From the sequence record ON529851.1: a stretch of 64,000 nt of DNA, one strand, 5' to 3'. The notes under the pieces are model-generated. The model did not search any database. It was given only the letters and a program-made list of their open reading frames with translations, and was not told the DNA's origin. Positions 2,984 through 8,690 of this stretch are shown here, one piece after another. Made by a program: the position numbers and the translations under genes. How positions within the stretch are numbered: position 1 is the stretch's first letter; each line of letters begins with the position of its first letter.

Positions 2984-3871
2984 TTACAAAGTCACGATCA
3001 ATCGGGGATTGAAGTTCGGGTTCAGTTCATGCCCGACATAGCCGCGCGGATTGCAGATCACGCGGGTCTCGCCGATCTGGTAGTCGCTGCTGTCATGCAT
3101 ATGACCATGGACCCACAGGGCGGGCTCCCATTCCAGCATCAGCGGCTCCAGCCGCGAGGCGTAGGCCGGGTTCAGCGGCGATCCCCGATAGCGATGGTGG
3201 CTCGACTGCTCCGACGGCGCATGGTGAGTAATCACCACGGTCGGGCCGTCATGCGGAACCCGTAGCGTTTCGGCCAGGAAGAACCGGCTCTCCAGGTGAA
3301 GGCGCCGCGTGTCTTCCGCCGTCAGGCGCTGCTGCTGCTTCAGTTCGATCTGCTGATAGTCGTTCATATCGGACTGGGCGTGCCGGATCGACAAGGGCCA
3401 GGTCCCGTAGAGATCGAAGTCGGTCCACAGGGTGGCGCCGAGGAACCGGACGTCGCCCATATGGACCTGCTCGTTATCCATGACGAAGACGCGGGCGGGC
3501 GCCAGTTCGTCCGCCTTGGCCTTCATCTTCTCGATGTGGCGGTGGTAGCGCCGCTTGCCGTAGAACTCGTGGTTGCCCGGCACATAGAGGCAAGGGACGT
3601 CAGGGAAATGACGCGCCAGCCAGATCACGCCGACGACGCCCGTCGCCAGGTCGCCGGCGGCGATGACCAAATCGATCTCGTCCGCCGTCGGCGCCGTCCA
3701 GGTGCGCCGGTCCATGCCGCCGAACTCCAGATGGAGGTCCGACAGGATCAGGGCGCGCAAGGGCCGTCGTCCGGACCGGCGCTGCGCCAGGCCGGCTTCG
3801 ATGTCGGCCTGCATGTCGGCCGCAGCCGCCACGGTGAACTCCATCTCAGCCTTGCTCCACTCGGTCTCCAT
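2984..3871 (-). CDS. Calcineurin-like metallophosphoesterase
   Basis: Motifs SDLHLE, AGD, VPGNHE, THHAP and HGHMH. Confidence 0.92.
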   Translation of the reverse strand: METEWSKAEMEFTVAAAADMQADIEAGLAQRRSGRRPLRALILSDLHLEFGGMDRRTWTAPTADEIDLVIAAGDLATGVVGVIWLARHFPDVPCLYVPGNHEFYGKRRYHRHIEKMKAKADELAPARVFVMDNEQVHMGDVRFLGATLWTDFDLYGTWPLSIRHAQSDMNDYQQIELKQQQRLTAEDTRRLHLESRFFLAETLRVPHDGPTVVITHHAPSEQSSHHRYRGSPLNPAYASRLEPLMLEWEPALWVHGHMHDSSDYQIGETRVICNPRGYVGHELNPNFNPRLIVTL

Positions 3872-3891
3872 CGTGGAGCATCCTTGAAATC

Positions 3892-4010
3892 TGGAGCGGG
3901 TGGACAGACTCGAACTGCCGCCTCCGGGTTAGCCACCCGGCGCTCCTGGGTCCACGCGAACCCCCGACGATGATTCGCGTGATCATCGTCGGCCCTAGAG
4001 CCTCACCCGC
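3892..4010 (-). ncRNA. tRNA-like RNA with a structured insertion replacing the D loop
   Basis: Acceptor GCGGGTG/CACCCGC-T-CCA, D stem GCTC/GAGC, anticodon arm CCGGG-TGGCTAA-CCCGG, T arm GGCAG-TTCGAGT-CTGTC; the 52-nt D loop holds an 11-bp hairpin. Confidence 0.75.
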
Positions 4011-4122
4011 ATAAGTTGGCAGGAGTTTTCAGATATGGCGAGCCATACCCAGGGCGACCCTCCTGCCAGGAACCCCCGTCTCGGTTTCTTTCACCGGCCC
4101 CGACACGAGCACCTGTCAAAGC

Positions 4123-4203
4123 CTATTTAGCCGTCAGGCTTGTGAGAACAAGAGAGGCGATTAGGCGCCTCTCGATGAACCACGTTGCGGACGGACGTAA
4201 CAT
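4123..4203 (-). CDS. Possible small ORF MLRPSATWFIERRLIASLVLTSLTAK
   Basis: Just downstream of the promoter at 4216-4245; contains an 8-bp hairpin. Confidence 0.3.
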   Translation of the reverse strand: MLRPSATWFIERRLIASLVLTSLTAK

Positions 4204-4215
4204 CGGCTTGCCGTG

Positions 4216-4245
4216 ATTACTGGCAGACGGCGCCGTAGCTGTCAA
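4216..4245 (-). promoter_or_regulatory. Sigma70-type promoter (TTGACA...AGTAAT)
   Basis: Perfect -35 immediately after the 4250-4284 terminator. Confidence 0.55.
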
Positions 4246-4249
4246 CAAT

Positions 4250-4284
4250 GAAAAACGCCCCGACCTTTCGATCGGGGCGTTCTT
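4250..4284 (-). terminator. Intrinsic terminator ending the main tRNA array transcript
   Basis: AACGCCCCGA/TCGGGGCGTT stem with a T run on the minus strand. Confidence 0.75.
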
Positions 4285-4595
4285 CAGAGATTCGCCATCC
4301 ACTGCTTGCGGCAGCGGGTGTGGTCCTTCCAGGACTTGCCGCCGGGACGCGACGCCATGAGGTCGTCGTAGGACGACGGCAGGACCATCCGGCGGCCACG
4401 GGCGCGGTAGAGGCGGTCGTGGGCTTCGCCGGTGTTGCGACGCCGCTCCTGCATGGTGCGGGGGCAGCGATGCATGTAGCGCCAGCGATGGCGGAAACGC
4501 CGGCAGCGGTAGGGCTCGCCGGGCTCCAGGTAGAGGACGCGCCAGCCCACGAAGTAGAAGCCGGTGTGGGTGACGCGTTCGAATTGGGGCTTCAT
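4284..4595 (-). CDS. Arg-rich hypothetical protein (103 aa)
   Basis: Strong SD AGGAGG; LPSSYDD...SWKDH...KQW pattern seen in phage proteins. Confidence 0.75.
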   Translation of the reverse strand: MKPQFERVTHTGFYFVGWRVLYLEPGEPYRCRRFRHRWRYMHRCPRTMQERRRNTGEAHDRLYRARGRRMVLPSSYDDLMASRPGGKSWKDHTRCRKQWMANL

Positions 4596-4620
4596 GACAG
4601 CCTCCTGCTAGGTTGAGTAC

Positions 4621-4656
4621 CTAGCGGGTGCTGTATTCCAGGTAGAATTTGATCAT
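4621..4656 (-). CDS. Possible uORF MIKFYLEYSTR
   Basis: AGGA SD; its stop sits in a hairpin next to the SD of 4284-4595. Confidence 0.3.
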   Translation of the reverse strand: MIKFYLEYSTR

Positions 4657-4695
4657 GGCCGCATCCTATCTCAAGCGGGGCGGTTCGTCGAGGAA

Positions 4696-4784
4696 TGGCG
4701 GATGGGGCAGGGATCGAACCCGCGTAACCCTCTCGGGTGTCGACCGCTTAGCAAGCGGCTGCCTTACCTCTCGGCCACCCATCC
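4696..4784 (-). tRNA. tRNA-Ser(GCT)
   Basis: Cloverleaf, loop TT-GCT-AA, long variable arm, G73-CCA. Confidence 0.93.
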
Positions 4785-4791
4785 GGGGTGA

Positions 4792-4876
4792 TGGCGGTGC
4801 GCCAGGGAATCGAACCCTCAACCTTGCGGTCGGCGACGGTTTTCAAGGCCGCTTGTCCCCATGGACGCTGCACACC
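4792..4876 (-). tRNA. tRNA-Ser(TGA)
   Basis: Loop CT-TGA-AA, long variable arm, G73-CCA; irregular D arm. Confidence 0.85.
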
Positions 4877-4881
4877 AAAGA

Positions 4882-4972
4882 TGGCGGACGGCACGCGATT
4901 CGAACGCGTGGGACCCAGGGGGTCCGCCTGCTTTCCAAGCAGGTGCCTTAAGCCGGGCTCAGCCAGCCGTCC
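4882..4972 (-). tRNA. tRNA-Ser(GGA)
   Basis: CCTGC-TTGGAAA-GCAGG, long variable arm, CCA. Confidence 0.93.
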
Positions 4973-4977
4973 GGTGT

Positions 4978-5195
4978 TGGTGGAGGCGAGGGGATTCGAA
5001 CCCCCGTAGACGCCGAACCCCCGCATTACCGAGGGCCGATCTCAGGTTTAGAACGCGTGTGCCGTCCTGACCATCTTCCGCAGGCCAGGAGGTCTATCGT
5101 AACGACCCCGTCGATCGGTTGCCTCTGCGTCCCGGATTTACCCGGACCGTTGTTCTGTTCCACGGTGCTCATGCCGAAACCCGAGCGACGCCCCC
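4978..5195 (-). ncRNA. Compact one-piece tmRNA-like RNA (218 nt)
   Basis: GGGGGCG/CGCCTCC-A-CCA acceptor with G3:U70, canonical T arm, no anticodon arm, tmRNA-like 5' end GGGGGCG..GGGTTTCGGC, internal GCA-started frame at 5122-5048. Confidence 0.62.
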
Positions 5196-5205
5196 GTGAA
5201 GGAAA

Positions 5206-5293
5206 TGGAGGATGGTGTGGGATTCGAACCCACGGAACCTTGCGGTCCTCCGGCTTTCGAAACCGGCGCGATCGGCCACTCCGCCAACCATCC
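5206..5293 (-). tRNA. tRNA-Ser(CGA)
   Basis: CCGGT-TTCGAAA-GCCGG, long variable arm, CCA. Confidence 0.92.
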
Positions 5294-5300
5294 AGAACAG

Positions 5301-5489
5301 TCAGGCCGAGGCCGGACTGTAGTTGTCGATGTCGTCGACCCGGATCGCCGTGCCCGCCGCAATCTGGCGGTCGGCGCTCAACAGGTCGGCGACCAGGTCG
5401 TCGGCCGAGACGGCGGTGCCGAGGGTGGCGAACTTCACGTTCACCAGGCGGCCGTCCGCAAACATCTCGTCGATCGCGGCGCGATCCAT
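5301..5489 (-). CDS. Hypothetical protein (62 aa) within the tRNA array
   Basis: ATG with SD AAAGGT; fills the gap between tRNAs. Confidence 0.7.
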   Translation of the reverse strand: MDRAAIDEMFADGRLVNVKFATLGTAVSADDLVADLLSADRQIAAGTAIRVDDIDNYSPASA

Positions 5490-5522
5490 GATAGACCTTT
5501 CTGCCGGACGCGCCGGCGGTGA

Positions 5523-5593
5523 TGGTGGAGACAGTGGGGCTCGAACCCACCAAGGCGTCCTTGCAAAGGATGCCTGCGCCCTGCGCTGTCCCC
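5523..5593 (-). tRNA. tRNA-Ala(TGC), minimal D loop
   Basis: GGGGACA/TGTCTCC with G3:U70, loop TT-TGC-AA. Confidence 0.85.
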
Positions 5594-5630
5594 GTAGGGG
5601 TTGATCGTCAGCCATGCTGACAACCATTGT

Positions 5631-5706
5631 TGGTCCTGGCACTCAGATTCGAACTGAGCCATCGTGCTCCACAAACACGCGCCTCCACCGCAGAGGCTTT
5701 ACCAGG
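5631..5706 (-). tRNA. tRNA-His(GTG)
   Basis: CGTGT-TTGTGGA-GCACG; A73 and no encoded G-1. Confidence 0.88.
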
Positions 5707-5708
5707 GT

Positions 5709-5796
5709 TGGTCGCGACGACAGGGATCGAACCTGCCCGGCCTCTCGGCCACTACCACCTCAAGGTAGCGCGTCTACCAGACTCCGCCACGTCGCG
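5709..5796 (-). tRNA. tRNA-Leu(GAG)
   Basis: CTACC-TTGAGGT-GGTAG, long variable arm. Confidence 0.92.
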
Positions 5797-5805
5797 ATCG
5801 AATGT

Positions 5806-5891
5806 TGGTGCCCGACCCCGGACTCGAACCGGGACGCCACGAGGGCCACGCCTTTTGAGGGCGCTGTGTCTACCGTTCCAGCCAGACGGGC
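5806..5891 (-). tRNA. tRNA-Leu(CAA)
   Basis: GCGCC-CTCAAAA-GGCGT, long variable arm. Confidence 0.92.
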
Positions 5892-5900
5892 AGTGAAAGA

Positions 5901-5987
5901 TGGTGCGGGTGAGAGGATTCGAACCTCCCCGGCACAAAGGCCACGAGTACCTGAGACTCGCGCGGCTACCAACTTCGCCACACCCGC
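5901..5987 (-). tRNA. tRNA-Leu(CAG)
   Basis: CGAGT-CTCAGGT-ACTCG, long variable arm. Confidence 0.92.
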
Positions 5988-5992
5988 ATTTT

Positions 5993-6074
5993 TGGAGAAC
6001 CCTGGTGGAGTCGAACCACTTGCGCCTGGATTAAAAGCCCAATCCCGGCCACCCGGATTTAACGCTCAAGGTCC
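5993..6074 (-). tRNA. tRNA-Lys(TTT), enlarged D region
   Basis: TTGGG-CTTTTAA-TCCAG; acceptor GGACCTT/AGGGTTC with wobble pairs. Confidence 0.72.
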
Positions 6075-6087
6075 CCTAAAATGATGT

Positions 6088-6178
6088 TGGTGAACGTGGT
6101 CGGACTCGCACCGACGATGAAGGTTGTAACCTAACGGGATTAAGAGCCCCGGCCTCTCGCTACTGAGGTGACACGTCC
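6088..6178 (-). tRNA. tRNA-Lys(CTT) with long variable arm
   Basis: CGGGG-CTCTTAA-TCCCG, 19-nt variable region, T loop TGCGAGT. Confidence 0.8.
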
Positions 6179-6216
6179 AAAACTGTTGTTCTTCTCCTGA
6201 AGACTTGATATGTGCA

Positions 6217-6287
6217 TGGAGCCGGCGGACGGTGTCGAACCGTCCCATGTCCACTACGAAAGGTCAGCCCTGCCACCAGGCGCCGGC
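6217..6287 (-). tRNA. tRNA-Thr(CGT)-like, degenerate
   Basis: GCCGGCG/CGCCGGC acceptor (Thr-type G1,C2,C3), good T arm, loop TT-CGT-AG with two stem mismatches. Confidence 0.55.
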
Positions 6288-6295
6288 GTTGTTGT

Positions 6296-6366
6296 TGGTG
6301 CCAAGGGAGGGAGTCAAACCCTCGCTGAACCCATACCAAGGGCTCGACCGATCACCCGGCCTTGGC
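6296..6366 (-). tRNA. tRNA-Thr(GGT)
   Basis: AGCCC-TTGGTAT-GGGTT; short D arm; CCA. Confidence 0.8.
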
Positions 6367-6374
6367 GTTGAAGA

Positions 6375-6449
6375 TGGTCGGAACACCGGGATTCGAACCT
6401 GGGACCCCTAGCTTCCCGAGCCAGTGCGCTACCGCTGCGCTACATTCCG
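6375..6449 (-). tRNA. tRNA-Pro(GGG)
   Basis: C1:G72, CTGGC-TCGGGAA-GCTAG. Confidence 0.92.
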
Positions 6450-6458
6450 ATTTGAAGA

Positions 6459-6535
6459 TGGTCGGCGAGGGAGGATTCGAACCTCCGATCCCTCCGACCC
6501 GAACGGAGTGACTTACCAGACTTGCCCACACGCCG
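6459..6535 (-). tRNA. tRNA-Pro(CGG)
   Basis: C1:G72, CTCCG-TTCGGGT-CGGAG. Confidence 0.93.
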
Positions 6536-6544
6536 ATGGAAACG

Positions 6545-6578
6545 AAAAAAGACCCCGGAGGCTATGCGCCTGGGGCCT
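6545..6578 (-). terminator. Intrinsic terminator (attenuator) about 10 nt upstream of the first tRNA of the array
   Basis: AGGCCCC-AGG/CCT-CC-GGGGTCT stem followed by TTTTTT. Confidence 0.75.
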
Positions 6579-6649
6579 GAAACAACTGCTGTTTTGGGAT
6601 TCAGCAGGTGATCGGCCCCTTAAGGGCGCCTCACCTGCGAGGACTGGAC

Positions 6650-6784
6650 TTAGGGCCAGCCTTCCAAGGAGACGCCACCGGTGGTGGGGGACTTCGGCGA
6701 CAGTTTCGTCGGCGCATGCGCGAGCGTCGACAGCGCCGTGGCGGCGGTCGAAAGATGGCTCAGCTTGTGCGACAAGGTAGTCAC
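6650..6784 (-). CDS. Candidate leader peptide MTTLSHKLSHLSTAATALSTLAHAPTKLSPKSPTTGGVSLEGWP (44 aa, GTG start)
   Basis: Codons 2-35 encode only T,L,S,H,K,A,P; lies between the promoter and the terminator of the tRNA array. Confidence 0.75.
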   Translation of the reverse strand: MTTLSHKLSHLSTAATALSTLAHAPTKLSPKSPTTGGVSLEGWP

Positions 6785-6836
6785 GATGAAGGTCCAGTCC
6801 GAAGAAGGAGCGCGAATGCGCTGTGATGAAGTCTGA

Positions 6837-6865
6837 TCTCTACAGGAAGCTTGAGCGTATGTCAA
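6837..6865 (-). promoter_or_regulatory. Promoter TTGACA-N17-TAGAGA of the main tRNA array
   Basis: Perfect -35 and 17-nt spacer. Confidence 0.7.
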
Positions 6866-6884
6866 GAACTTCAGCAGAAAAAGT

Positions 6885-6923
6885 TGGTAGAGGGGCTGAT
6901 CGCGCTTGTCGAGCGACCCTCTC
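6885..6923 (-). ncRNA. Candidate 39-nt CCA-ending minihelix RNA
   Basis: AGAGGG/CCCTCT-A-CCA hairpin starting at the predicted TSS of the 6931-6959 promoter, followed by a T run. Confidence 0.45.
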
Positions 6924-6930
6924 GAAACGC

Positions 6931-6959
6931 CTTGTGCCAGGATCGGCGGCGATCGTCAA
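6931..6959 (-). promoter_or_regulatory. Promoter TTGACG-N17-CACAAG
   Basis: Shares GCCGCCGATCCTGGCAC with the 8206-8234 promoter. Confidence 0.55.
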
Positions 6960-7062
6960 CAGGGAAAATGCACGCGCGCGGCCGAGGGGGAGCGGAAGAC
7001 CGCGCGCGTGCCCGGCAGACCGTCGGGGGACGGGGCCTGGGTCGTCGGGGGACGGGGAGGGG

Positions 7063-7299
7063 TCAGCCGGCGCGGCGCTTGAGCGTCTCGTGCAGCGGCG
7101 GATAGGGGACCGGGCCGTAGATCACCTCGACGAGGCGAGGGCGGCGGCCGGTGCGGATTTTGGAAGGCAGGGGCACGTTGCGGCGCCGCAGTTCGGCGGC
7201 GGCGGCGGCGCTCGCCAGGGAGCCTGACAGGTAGACGCCGATCAGTTCGGCGACCGTCAGGGTCATCATGCGCTGGGCGCGGGTGGTGTTGTGAGCCAC
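7063..7299 (-). CDS. Hypothetical protein (78 aa)
   Basis: GTG start with SD GGAGAG. Confidence 0.65.
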   Translation of the reverse strand: MAHNTTRAQRMMTLTVAELIGVYLSGSLASAAAAAELRRRNVPLPSKIRTGRRPRLVEVIYGPVPYPPLHETLKRRAG

Positions 7300-7397
7300 G
7301 AGGGTCTCTCCATCTGGATGTGATCCAGGCGGGAGACGCGGTTTCGCGCTGGGTGACCGGTGTGGTCCCCGTCCTGGAAATTACCAGATGCGAGAGT

Positions 7398-7589
7398 TTA
7401 GTCGGAGGGCTTGGCCCCGAAGACCGAGGCGATCGCCGTCAAAGCCTTCTTGACCCGGTTGGGCCGCTGGGTCAGCGCCGAGGCGCAGACCTTCTTGATT
7501 TCGTCGAGGGTGAGCGAGGCCGGGTCACGCAGGCCGCGCGCGGCGATCGAGCCGACGCTGGCGGAGGTGACTTCGGGGGTGATGCTCAT
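7398..7589 (-). CDS. Hypothetical protein (63 aa, MSITPEV...)
   Basis: ATG after GAGG, just downstream of tRNA-Asp. Confidence 0.65.
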   Translation of the reverse strand: MSITPEVTSASVGSIAARGLRDPASLTLDEIKKVCASALTQRPNRVKKALTAIASVFGAKPSD

Positions 7590-7600
7590 GGAAAAACCTC

Positions 7601-7675
7601 TGGCGAGTCCAAGGGGAGTTGAACCCCTCTCTCCACCGTGACAGGGTGGTGTCCTAACCGATAGACGATGGACCC
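7601..7675 (-). tRNA. tRNA-Asp(GTC)
   Basis: CCACC-CTGTCAC-GGTGG, G73-CCA. Confidence 0.94.
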
Positions 7676-7706
7676 GTATCAGAGGGTCGATCCGCAGGAA
7701 GATGCT

Positions 7707-7784
7707 TGGAAGGGCGCCGGAGACTCGAACTCCGCTCACTTGGTTGAAAGCCAAGTATCCTGCAAACCGCTAGACGAGCGCCCC
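7707..7784 (-). tRNA. tRNA-Glu(TTC)
   Basis: CTTGG-CTTTCAA-CCAAG, CCA. Confidence 0.9.
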
Positions 7785-7818
7785 ATAAAGCACAGGGCGT
7801 CGAACACGAGAGCCGCGA

Positions 7819-7884
7819 TTAGGCGGCGGTCGTATCTCGGCCCTGGAAGGCCTCTCGTTCGTAGCTGGTCAGACGGTAGATCAT
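7819..7884 (-). CDS. Candidate leader peptide MIYRLTSYEREAFQGRDTTAA (21 aa)
   Basis: ATG at the predicted TSS of the 7891-7919 promoter, directly ahead of the Glu/Asp tRNAs. Confidence 0.5.
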   Translation of the reverse strand: MIYRLTSYEREAFQGRDTTAA

Positions 7885-7890
7885 TTGGTG

Positions 7891-7919
7891 CTTGTAACAG
7901 AACTGTCGGTGGGTGTCAA
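7891..7919 (-). promoter_or_regulatory. Promoter TTGACA-N17-TACAAG
   Basis: Perfect -35 and 17-nt spacer; leaderless. Confidence 0.68.
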
Positions 7920-8095
7920 GAAGGACGGCGAAACTTTTTGGCCTTTCGGGCGGGTCGATCCTCATCGACTTCAGGCTCGGCCGCGTCCCTGCCCATCCAC
8001 AGGGCCGCGAGAAACGCGGGCGGACCCATCAGGGCTTCCAAGCGCTTCAAGGCCCGGTCGTTGGCCGCCAGGAAGGCGTCGCCGTATTCAAGCAT
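7916..8095 (-). CDS. Hypothetical protein (59 aa, MLEYGDAF...)
   Basis: SD GAGG upstream of the ATG. Confidence 0.6.
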   Translation of the reverse strand: MLEYGDAFLAANDRALKRLEALMGPPAFLAALWMGRDAAEPEVDEDRPARKAKKFRRPS

Positions 8096-8156
8096 GGAAC
8101 CTCGGAGGATACAGGGGCAGGCTTCAATGGACGGCGTTTGACCGCGCCCATCTCGG

Positions 8157-8198
8157 TGGTAGCAGCACACCAGCCCTGCTCGGCTGGCCCCGCCCCTC
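8157..8198 (-). ncRNA. Second candidate CCA-ending minihelix RNA (42 nt)
   Basis: Starts at the predicted TSS of the 8206-8234 promoter; GCCAGCC/GGCTGGT hairpin; ends CT-A-CCA. Confidence 0.35.
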
Positions 8199-8205
8199 GT
8201 TCCGG

Positions 8206-8234
8206 CGTGTGCCAGGATCGGCGGCAAAGGTCAA
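8206..8234 (-). promoter_or_regulatory. Promoter TTGACC-N17-CACACG
   Basis: 17-nt identity with the 6931-6959 promoter. Confidence 0.5.
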
Positions 8235-8431
8235 GGGTAAAATCGACGGGTGACCGCTACCGGCCTCGCCTGCTGGCCCGTCCCAGCGCCTGACCTTCTC
8301 GACGCGACGCCCTTGTGGGCGTTATGGCCTTCCCGTCCGAAGACAGACGCCGCGAAGGGTCAGCGGGACCGCATGATCGTCAGCCGCACGGCCAGCGCAG
8401 CGAGAGGTTCAGAGGCCTGTCCCGGAAAGAG

Positions 8432-8506
8432 TGGAGCGACTGGTCGGAATCGAACCGACGTCCCCAGGTTGGAAGCCTGGTGCTAAGGCCCCTCAGCTAC
8501 AGTCGC
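8432..8506 (-). tRNA. tRNA-Gly(TCC)
   Basis: CCAGG-CTTCCAA-CCTGG, U73-CCA. Confidence 0.92.
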
Positions 8507-8520
8507 AGTATAAAACAAGG

Positions 8521-8596
8521 TGGAGCGACTCTCGGGACTCGAACCCGACCCTGCGCGTTGGCAACGCGTTGTACCCACCCATAATACGTGAGTCGC
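8521..8596 (-). tRNA. tRNA-Gly(GCC)
   Basis: Loop TT-GCC-AA, U73-CCA. Confidence 0.88.
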
Positions 8597-8608
8597 ATGG
8601 TTAATAAA

Positions 8609-8690
8609 TGGCACGGGTGGAGGGATTCGAACCCCCGACATATGCTGGTTTTGGAGACCAGTGCCTTGAGCCAGACTTGGCGACACCCGT
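8609..8690 (-). tRNA. tRNA-Trp(CCA)
   Basis: CTGGT-CTCCAAA-ACCAG, G73-CCA. Confidence 0.9.

Follow-up and report, generated by a model that had tools for sequence, protein, structure and literature searches.

The first 64 kb of the genome of Brevundimonas phage vB_BpoS-Marchewka (ON529851.1, 348 kb, Dolichocephalovirinae), analysed here as one stretch of 64,000 nucleotides (nt) that we call the window (its coordinates are identical to those of the record), carry on the minus strand a 119-nt RNA gene that has the four arms of a tRNA and a D loop greatly expanded by two tandem hairpins with complementary loops. This element lies immediately upstream of a metallophosphoesterase gene, as had been noticed in an earlier reading of the window made without database searches (the original prediction below); the two are on the same strand, and annotation and domain search agree on this arrangement. 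We find the element in nine phage genomes that belong to four lineages, and the metallophosphoesterase gene is always downstream of it. The features of the locus are collected in Table 1, in which the parts of the RNA are read 5' to 3' on the minus strand, that is from 4010 to 3892.

Table 1. Features of the tRNA-like RNA gene and its surroundings in the Marchewka genome
Feature	Position	Strand	Basis and remarks
Whole tRNA-like RNA gene, 119 nt	3892..4010	minus	Sequence, covariance model R1; no annotation in any record
Acceptor stem 5' strand GCGGGUG	4004..4010	minus	Pairs with 3896-3902
D stem 5' strand GCUC, after A8 and G9	3998..4001	minus	Sequence, alignment
D-loop expansion, 52 nt: UAGGG, hairpin 1, hairpin 2, AG	3946..3997	minus	Sequence and folding
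Hairpin 1, 11-bp stem and 7-nt loop CACGCGA	3964..3992	minus	Repeat search; arms 3964-3974 and 3982-3992
Loop-1 segment CACGCGAA, complementary to loop-2 segment	3974..3981	minus	Repeat search
Hairpin 2, GGGUUC-GCGU-GGACCC	3948..3963	minus	Minimum-free-energy folds
Loop-2 segment UUCGCGUG, partner of loop-1 segment	3953..3960	minus	Repeat search
D stem 3' strand GAGC	3942..3945	minus	Sequence, alignment
Anticodon arm CCGGG-UGGCUAA-CCCGG	3924..3940	minus	G33 at 3934; anticodon GCU at 3931-3933
T arm GGCAG-UUCGAGU-CUGUC, one G.U pair	3903..3919	minus	Sequence, alignment; two pairs with double changes
Acceptor stem 3' strand CACCCGC, discriminator U73 and encoded CCA	3892..3902	minus	Sequence
Terminator-like hairpin with U run, end of upstream gene	4249..4286	minus	Repeat search, sequence
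Promoter-like TTGACA-18 nt-AGTAAT	4216..4245	minus	Conserved in Marchewka, Gurke, Colossus, CcrPW
Conserved structured leader, about 200 nt	4011..4215	minus	Alignments, repeat search, folds
Metallophosphoesterase gene, syntenic in all lineages	2984..3871	minus	Pfam Metallophos, PHROG 1649; annotated start probably too far upstream

The cloverleaf body

Read as a tRNA, the element has an acceptor stem of seven Watson-Crick pairs (GCGGGUG/CACCCGC), a D stem of four (GCUC/GAGC) that is followed by G26 before the anticodon stem, an anticodon stem of five (CCGGG/CCCGG) that is invariant across all lineages, and a variable loop of 4 nt. The original prediction had described the acceptor, anticodon and T stems as perfect and the CCA end as encoded; this holds for the acceptor stem, the anticodon stem and the CCA, and has to be amended for the T stem, where GGCAG/CUGUC contains one G.U pair. 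The cloverleaf is also the minimum-free-energy fold of the 119 nt (z = -3.1; 2 of 200 shuffled sequences fold equally well). The stems that define a tRNA (7 bp in the acceptor stem, 3-4 bp in the D stem and 5 bp each in the anticodon and T stems) are all paired in the four lineages, and at the sequence level the elbow has the expected partners, a T loop UUCGAGU or UUCAAGU and an invariant UAGGG at the beginning of the D loop, which in the copies of Caulobacter phages CcrColossus (called Colossus here) and CcrPW is able to pair instead with a CCUUA that lies between the two hairpins. The usual U8 and A14 are swapped, A8 standing with U14.

The anticodon loop had been given as U-G-GCU-A-A, with G at position 33, and it reads the same on the minus strand. 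The four lineages have G, C, C and A at this position, and a relative on the metagenomic viral contig L011 (described below) has C; none has U. Both clades of Brevundimonas phages have the anticodon GCU and the Caulobacter phages GUU, a difference at position 35 (C or U), and the canonical tRNAs of the syntenic cluster retain their anticodons. The acceptor end is glycine-like, as had also been proposed, yet the anticodon lacks C36. The anticodon arm of the CcrPW copy recurs in a tRNA-Asn(GUU) on an AT-rich, high-coverage contig that is probably from a phage (L017, positions 505-580; the same in L028).

ARAGORN finds nothing at this site in the native sequences of Marchewka or Kikimora, and in those of Colossus and CcrPW it makes spurious "tRNA-Gly with intron" calls; when the insert is deleted in silico, the program calls a tRNA in the copy of every lineage. 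Besides this lack of recognition by the standard models, the element departs from ordinary tRNAs in the size of its D loop, at U33 and in the U8-A14 tertiary pair. No Rfam family was found for the element or its leader in 3700-4700, either at the gathering score or with E up to 10. Known tRNA D loops are about 4-11 nt long and no large expansion of this loop appears in a review of non-canonical tRNAs (PMC7609411), and our search of the literature for phage tRNAs with D-loop insertions found nothing directly relevant. A complete tRNA body with an extra two-hairpin module in its D loop is an architecture that we have not found described. Transfer-messenger RNA (tmRNA) was ruled out as an identity for the element by its G3-C70 pair, its complete anticodon arm and the absence of a match to the tmRNA model.

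The D-loop domain

The original prediction was exact in counting 52 nt between the two strands of the D stem, and its 11-bp hairpin with the loop CACGCGA was recovered by a repeat search. The insert measures 52 nt in Marchewka, Kikimora and Gurke; Colossus has 59 nt and CcrPW 58 nt. Folded separately, the inserts of Marchewka, Kikimora, Colossus, CcrPW and a variant from the sequencing run X13 (below) all give the same two tandem hairpins in a common layout: a 5' single strand that opens with UAGGG, a long hairpin 1, a hairpin 2 of 6-8 bp and a tail of 2-3 nt. The loop of hairpin 1 had been noted to be complementary to a segment downstream of it; the repeat search returned this as the 8-nt match CACGCGAA/UUCGCGUG, and the complementarity covaries in three sequence versions, the apical loops being ACGC/GCGU in the Marchewka type, GGCC/GGCC in the Kikimora type and GCGC/GCGC in Colossus and CcrPW. 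Counting the neighbouring bases, 6-8 pairs can form, for which the duplex energy is calculated at -10.7 to -16.5 kcal/mol. The Marchewka loops are neither palindromic nor identical, so the conserved feature is the complementarity and not a repeated protein-binding motif. Two hairpins whose complementary loops are kept by covariation are what is expected of kissing hairpins, and the kissing of fully paired 7-nt hairpin loops is an established motif (ColE1 RNA I/II). The covariation suggests a physical contact between the two loops in three dimensions.

Two further parts of the earlier model fared less well on folding and comparison. The proposed closure of the structure by a GGG/CCC helix is absent from the minimum-free-energy fold, in which this CCC pairs with the GGG right after hairpin 1 and so forms the second, 6-bp hairpin, and the closure is not conserved in the relatives (Kikimora retains two of the three pairs). 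An H-type pseudoknot is judged sterically unlikely because the whole 7-nt loop would pair, leaving 3-4 nt to span the 11-bp stem (the connecting loops would be 0, 0 and 3-4 nt); its would-be downstream strand is the loop of hairpin 2 itself. The two-hairpin state is more stable than a nested long-range helix by 1.4-17 kcal/mol, with the smallest margin in Kikimora, whose insert may adopt an alternative fold. According to these folds the conserved picture is probably one of tandem hairpins with kissing loops, or of an alternative fold.

Conservation and covariation

The element is identical in Marchewka, Bambus, Papperlapapp, Domovoi and Kabachok, and the copies in Kikimora and Gurke are 75% identical to it; the two Caulobacter phages carry further copies in the same position before the orthologous phosphoesterase gene. 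A blastn search of 50,697 phage records with the Marchewka and Colossus copies found no lineage beyond these four. Pattern scans for the anticodon arm and the 5' motif in IMG/VR, metagenome contigs and genome contigs found no further copy with a D-loop insert, and returned chance coding matches, ordinary tRNAs and the L011 relative only.

The original prediction had proposed that a covariance model be tried on related phages. Such a model, R1, built from the Marchewka and Kikimora copies, recovers the element across them, with 143 bits in Marchewka, 139 in Kikimora and Gurke, 77.5 in Colossus and 75.1 in CcrPW; the best ordinary tRNA, a tRNA-Gly, scores 51.7 bits (the E-values of R1 are rough). 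In the window and the other loci examined R1 finds no second copy that bears the insert. On the model alignment 108 of 108 stem cells are standard pairs and ten pairs have changes on both sides; none of 500 shuffles reached this covariation score, and pairing was down to 40-56% in controls with slid partners. The hairpins of Colossus and CcrPW, which R1 is unable to align column by column, were compared by separate folding. Double changes are found across the lineages in acceptor pairs 1-72 and 5-68, and relative to Kikimora there are four in the lower stem of hairpin 1 and two, with two one-sided changes in addition, in hairpin 2. A comparison of Marchewka with Kikimora gives about 7 differences in the 67 positions of the tRNA core, and differences at about half of the positions of the insert. 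It follows that the insert changes rapidly and yet retains its fold.

A natural variant was found in run X13, which is labelled as an RNA library and yields a single contig of 184 nt that covers 3855-4027. Its eight differences from Marchewka within the element all fall in the stem of hairpin 1. Six of the eight make up three compensatory pairs (A-U to U-A, C-G to G-C and U-A to C-G), one gives a G-U pair in the minus-strand RNA and an A.C mismatch on the plus strand, and one opens the loop-closing pair of the hairpin. This pattern of substitution is strong evidence that selection acts on an RNA hairpin made from the minus strand. A second run labelled as an RNA library, X10, from the same organism, has a 187-nt contig (3603-3789) that is identical to part of the metallophosphoesterase gene, and that could derive from transcript or from DNA.

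As judged from the alignments and the variant, selection maintains the pairing of the cloverleaf and of both hairpins, and the complementarity of the loops is kept. The element is very probably a functional structured RNA.

The leader and the probable transcription unit

Fifteen ARAGORN-detected tRNA genes form a cluster (8690..4696) upstream of the element, and a small gene (4595..4284) and a terminator-like hairpin separate the cluster from it. The promoter-like site that follows was missed by a consensus scan, as its second hexamer has no A at position 2. The leader includes a 9-bp stem (4017-4025 with 4060-4068), and its proximal hairpin has an outer stem that covaries, GGCAGGAG/CUCCUGCC being replaced by GGUGG/CCACC. 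Invariant in the leader are CUGAAAAC and a CUUAU directly 5' of the start of the tRNA-like sequence. A search for terminators found none between the element and the metallophosphoesterase gene. From the promoter-like site, the leader and the absence of a terminator before the gene, we infer that the element is embedded in the 5' leader of a metallophosphoesterase/peptide deformylase operon. The leader of about 200 nt, which has no Rfam family, could itself be a functional RNA that is freed by RNase P.

The encoded metallophosphoesterase is of the calcineurin type, and its gene is followed by five small genes and a peptide deformylase gene. Sequence searches found no solved relative of the protein, and it offers no clue to function beyond the family name. 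Its homologues align only from residue 38 on; the start annotated in Marchewka, 3871, gives the protein 37 additional residues without counterpart in any homologue and falls within the loop of an 8-bp hairpin (3853-3880). On these comparisons translation probably begins near 3760. In Kikimora and Gurke the start codon of the gene is 21 nt downstream of the CCA of the element.

Decoder or mimic

The reading that we tentatively favour, and that we regard as quite possible rather than established, is that the element is a non-decoding tRNA mimic excised from the leader of the operon. A transcript from its own promoter would carry the leader of about 200 nt of the metallophosphoesterase/peptide deformylase operon; RNase P would cut at the conserved junction between CUUAU and G, and trimming from the 3' side would proceed to the encoded CCA. 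RNase P and 3' trimming release co-transcribed tRNAs of other phages, and U at position -1 suits an established preference of RNase P. The module of two hairpins sits in the variable pocket of the D loop, behind the conserved UAGGG; its loops probably kiss, and in the excised RNA it would be a compact extra domain near the tRNA elbow, and the tRNA body with its conserved anticodon arm without U33 would be shown to tRNA-binding proteins, of which host tRNA-targeting nucleases and enzymes of tRNA processing or modification are candidates. The extra domain would either separate the RNA from the tRNAs in use for translation or provide a further surface for binding. The RNA may be a decoy or a scaffold, and it is our conjecture that the RNA could be bait for host tRNA nucleases, which would fit the invariant anticodon arm, the variable position 33 and the genus-specific anticodon. 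A more specific proposal is doubtful: that these phages make a new architectural class of tRNA-derived RNA, a complete L-shaped tRNA body with a rigid kissing-hairpin domain in its D loop, which would be an uncleavable nuclease bait with the anticodon arm as the lure, protected from cleavage by its lack of U33 and with an anticodon matched to the host genus, or else a charged tRNA for a non-ribosomal or phage-specific use.

That the element is not a normal decoder had been proposed in the original prediction, and this is plausible from the lack of U33 taken together with the anticodon switch, the misfit of identity elements and the presence of a duplicate tRNA. Taken alone, G33 carries little weight in this argument, because a well-scoring tRNA of this phage, a bona fide tRNA-Pro(GGG) (6375-6449, minus strand, 53 bits), has C33. 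The opposite reading, to which we give a lower but still appreciable probability, is that the element is a working elongator tRNA of unusual shape that a host synthetase would charge and that would read AGY in the Brevundimonas phages and AAY in the Caulobacter phages; its missing U33 and its D-loop domain would then protect it from tRNA-cleaving host defences. Several observations speak for it, and most of them also weigh against a mimic. The body is otherwise textbook (T loop UUCRAGU, a GG for the elbow within UAGGG that is able to supply G18 and G19, a 7-nt anticodon loop, and an encoded CCA as in every tRNA of the cluster), and nucleotides 32 (U), 34 and 36-38 (A37, A38) are conserved, as in a decoder; the anticodon is constant within each host genus and only position 33 varies. 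Besides the C33 of tRNA-Pro(GGG), there is A33 in the normal-sized tRNA-Asn(GUU) of the unrelated phage-like contig L017, and the L011 relative combines GUU with G73, an Asn-type set. This phage family has other odd and probably functional tRNAs, and oddity alone is no proof that an RNA does not decode. Changes in the anticodon loop as a means of escape from nucleases have been proposed for phage tRNAs (PMC10264068). The comparative evidence for the mimic also comes from four lineages and one variant contig only, with limited statistical power, and the X13 contig, which is weak evidence of expression, is of low depth and runs beyond the element at both ends, by 17 nt upstream and by 37 nt downstream; it could be DNA carry-over or a precursor.

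Against decoding stands the fact that the anticodon switches from GUU to GCU without a change of identity. U73 and a class-I body without a long variable arm suit neither Ser nor Asn identity (identity rules in PMC9976931): U73 and the short variable loop are wrong for SerRS, and C35 is wrong for AsnRS. Each phage already has a canonical tRNA for this anticodon, namely tRNA-Ser(GCU) at 4784..4696 in Marchewka and, as the canonical counterpart of the GUU anticodon, the tRNA-Asn reported in the Colossus genome paper. A domain of 52-59 nt near the elbow would likely clash with the ribosome, and an aptamer that was engineered into a D loop was unstable, not being stably expressed, in E. coli (PMC5397188).

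Other readings must also be weighed. It is rather improbable that the element is mainly a cis-acting module for processing or stability, which recruits RNase P and the 3' enzymes, frees the leader, sets the 5' end of the messenger and leaves an idle RNA behind. Its location speaks for this: in every lineage it lies between the structured leader and the gene that opens the operon, no terminator comes after it, and the start codon follows at a distance of 21 nt in Kikimora and Gurke. The conserved U at -1 would also suit RNase P; RNase P, however, requires only an acceptor/T-arm minihelix and an elbow, and the invariant anticodon arm, the encoded CCA and the covarying two-hairpin domain are left unexplained. 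Excision of the insert, with the halves joined or left nicked to give a normal-sized tRNA, is very improbable, and the "processing-dependent tRNA" of the original prediction finds no support. The insert does have short conserved single-stranded flanks (5' UAGGG; 3' AG, AUG or GUG), its removal leaves a D loop of 7-12 nt that ARAGORN accepts, and the L011 relative has another hairpin insert in the T stem, a type of site at which archaeal tRNA introns occur (PMC3241643). On the other hand, an archaeal-type intron was rejected in the four lineages inspected, whose junctions have no bulge-helix-bulge (3-nt bulges, 4-bp helix), and bacteria are without the archaeal splicing endonuclease; a group I intron or self-cleaving ribozyme was rejected as well, there being no intron or ribozyme match in Rfam with E up to 10 and the 52-nt insert being far below about 200 nt. 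In the part of the genome inspected no RNA ligase or cleavage enzyme was identified nearby.

Least credible of all is that the gene is a decaying tRNA pseudogene with a palindromic insertion, or a DNA-level operator or terminator, even though it is missed by gene finders, its loops are GC-rich palindromes and its anticodon loop is two changes away from the tRNA-Gly(GCC) type. All stems are intact in every lineage and changes in them are compensatory. The original prediction would have given way to a pseudogene if the structure of the insert were not conserved and the RNA neither expressed nor processed; the structure is conserved, and the covariation and the X13 variant led us to reject the pseudogene. 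Among DNA-level and mobile elements, an operator was set aside on the variable spacing between the complementary segments (21, 23 and 26 nt), which suits no fixed geometry of DNA binding, and on the strand-specific G-U pair, a terminator on the lack of a U run after either hairpin, and a mobile palindromic element on the absence of a second copy of the hairpin from the window.

If the decoy or a nuclease-resistant tRNA is true, it would be a new device in the tRNA-centred conflict between phages and bacteria. A naturally selected D-loop domain of 52-59 nt indicates that the tRNA fold tolerates, and can exploit, expansion near the elbow, which is relevant to the structural biology of tRNA and to the design of tagged tRNAs.

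Other non-canonical tRNA-like genes

The same cluster contains several other tRNA-like genes that are non-canonical and lack annotation. At 4978-5195 on the minus strand there is an unannotated 218-nt RNA whose acceptor stem GGGGGCG/CGCCUCC, G3.U70 pair, A73 and CCA make up the alanine identity that tmRNA has. A D arm and a canonical T arm are present too, and the Rfam tmRNA family matches below threshold (31.9 bits; cut-off 47). The Marchewka and Kikimora groups share 97% identity in this RNA, much more than in its flanks, and it occurs in seven of the seven Brevundimonas phages; two of the few differences are at third positions of a possible 24-codon frame that ends in UAA. The paper that describes the phage genomes detected no tmRNA. 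By its sequence this is possibly a mini-tmRNA-like RNA.

A tRNA-Lys(CUU) at 6091-6178 (minus strand), whose variable arm is long, was missed by ARAGORN and by the Marchewka annotation, and is found with the Rfam tRNA model in relaxed mode (38.6 bits); its counterpart of 87 nt is annotated in Kikimora and Gurke. Nearby are three unannotated tRNA-like candidates with paired acceptor ends and CCA (5996-6075, 6217-6287 and 6296-6366, all minus strand), of which one is Lys(UUU)-like with a long D stem of the Sec type (21 bits with the tRNA-Sec model) and the other two are 71 nt long, score 21.8 and 23.7 bits with R1, and recur in sister phages, where they are conserved. At 4795-4877 (minus strand), where the locus tag MARCHEWKA_00150 is missing, the sequence matches Rfam tRNA-Sec with 30.6 bits, and the corresponding site in Domovoi is annotated as a fourth tRNA-Ser. 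Towards the end of the Marchewka genome lie another tRNA-like gene that lacks annotation and whose anticodon loop is of the Arg(CCG) type (347752-347832, L046 11753-11833; 27.8 bits with R1) and an annotated tRNA-Asn of 84 nt (347956-348039, L046 11957-12040); the variable arm of this tRNA-Asn is long, unusually for Asn. A substantial part of the tRNA-like genes of these giant phages escapes standard tRNA finders, and published tRNA counts therefore underestimate their number.

Origin and comparison with known systems

In our reading the element descends from a class-I phage tRNA, and the nearest ordinary tRNA appears to be the tRNA-Gly(GCC) of this phage (8596..8521). This tRNA-Gly shares with the element stems of 7, 4, 5 and 5 bp, the T loop UUCGAGU, a 4-nt variable loop and the encoded CCA, and also G1-C72, C2-G71, G3-C70, U73 and the unusual A8 with U14-A15-GGG. 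It differs in having an 8-nt D loop, U33 and the anticodon GCC, where the element has 52-59 nt, no U33, and GCU or GUU. R1 ranks tRNA-Gly first among ordinary tRNAs, and the overall identity of the element to it is no higher than to other tRNAs. An origin from a duplicated tRNA-Gly, with drift of the anticodon loop from UUGCCAA to UNGCUAA to UNGUUAA, would be a reasonable reconstruction. The tRNA-Trp of the cluster (82 nt, 8609-8690, minus strand) has an acceptor stem and T arm in common with the Colossus copy of the element. The relative on contig L011 (6107-6215, minus strand; also contig L021) matches the element in its 5' half and anticodon arm (with C33 and GUU). Its D loop has the normal size of 8 nt, position 73 is G, and the insert, a hairpin of 33 nt, is located within the T stem instead. 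A long open frame, possibly spurious, encloses this relative, and no relative of the contig was found in the phage collection. From these sequences this tRNA lineage seems prone to gaining structured expansions.

The closest analogues of the element are non-decoding tRNA-like RNAs and the extra arms of class-II tRNAs. Known tRNA-like RNAs that do not decode include the tRNA-like domain of tmRNA, the bacterial Y RNA YrlA, plant-virus 3' structures, gammaherpesvirus vtRNAs and mascRNA, several of which are viral; in them the shape of a tRNA serves processing or the binding of proteins. These lack one or more arms or are built on pseudoknots, whereas the element has four arms and a domain in addition. 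Stable RNAs C and D of phage T4 are small RNAs of unknown function that lie at the end of the T4 tRNA cluster and are processed with the tRNAs (our literature search gave no source for them). Class-II tRNAs (Ser, Leu and Tyr), and the class-II-like tRNA-Lys and tRNA-Asn of this phage, are similar to the element in having an extra helical arm with compensatory evolution, but theirs is a single arm in the variable region, and that of the element is a pair of hairpins with complementary loops in the D loop. Several tRNAs expanded in this class-II manner occur in the phage family. Archaeal pre-tRNA introns at non-canonical positions likewise place tens of nucleotides in the D or T region, but need a bulge-helix-bulge and the archaeal endonuclease, neither of which is present here (PMC3241643). 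Phage tRNAs proposed to escape nucleases are, like the element, phage-encoded and deviate in the anticodon loop beside the anticodon; they are normal-sized decoders, and position 33 is not discussed in the text searched (PMC10264068), whereas the element has a large domain and an anticodon that varies between orthologues. Fusions of the Spinach aptamer to tRNA also carry a structured module in a tRNA loop; among them stable expression was reached by the fusion in the variable loop only, and not by that in the D loop (PMC5397188), and the element is a D-loop module that has been maintained naturally.

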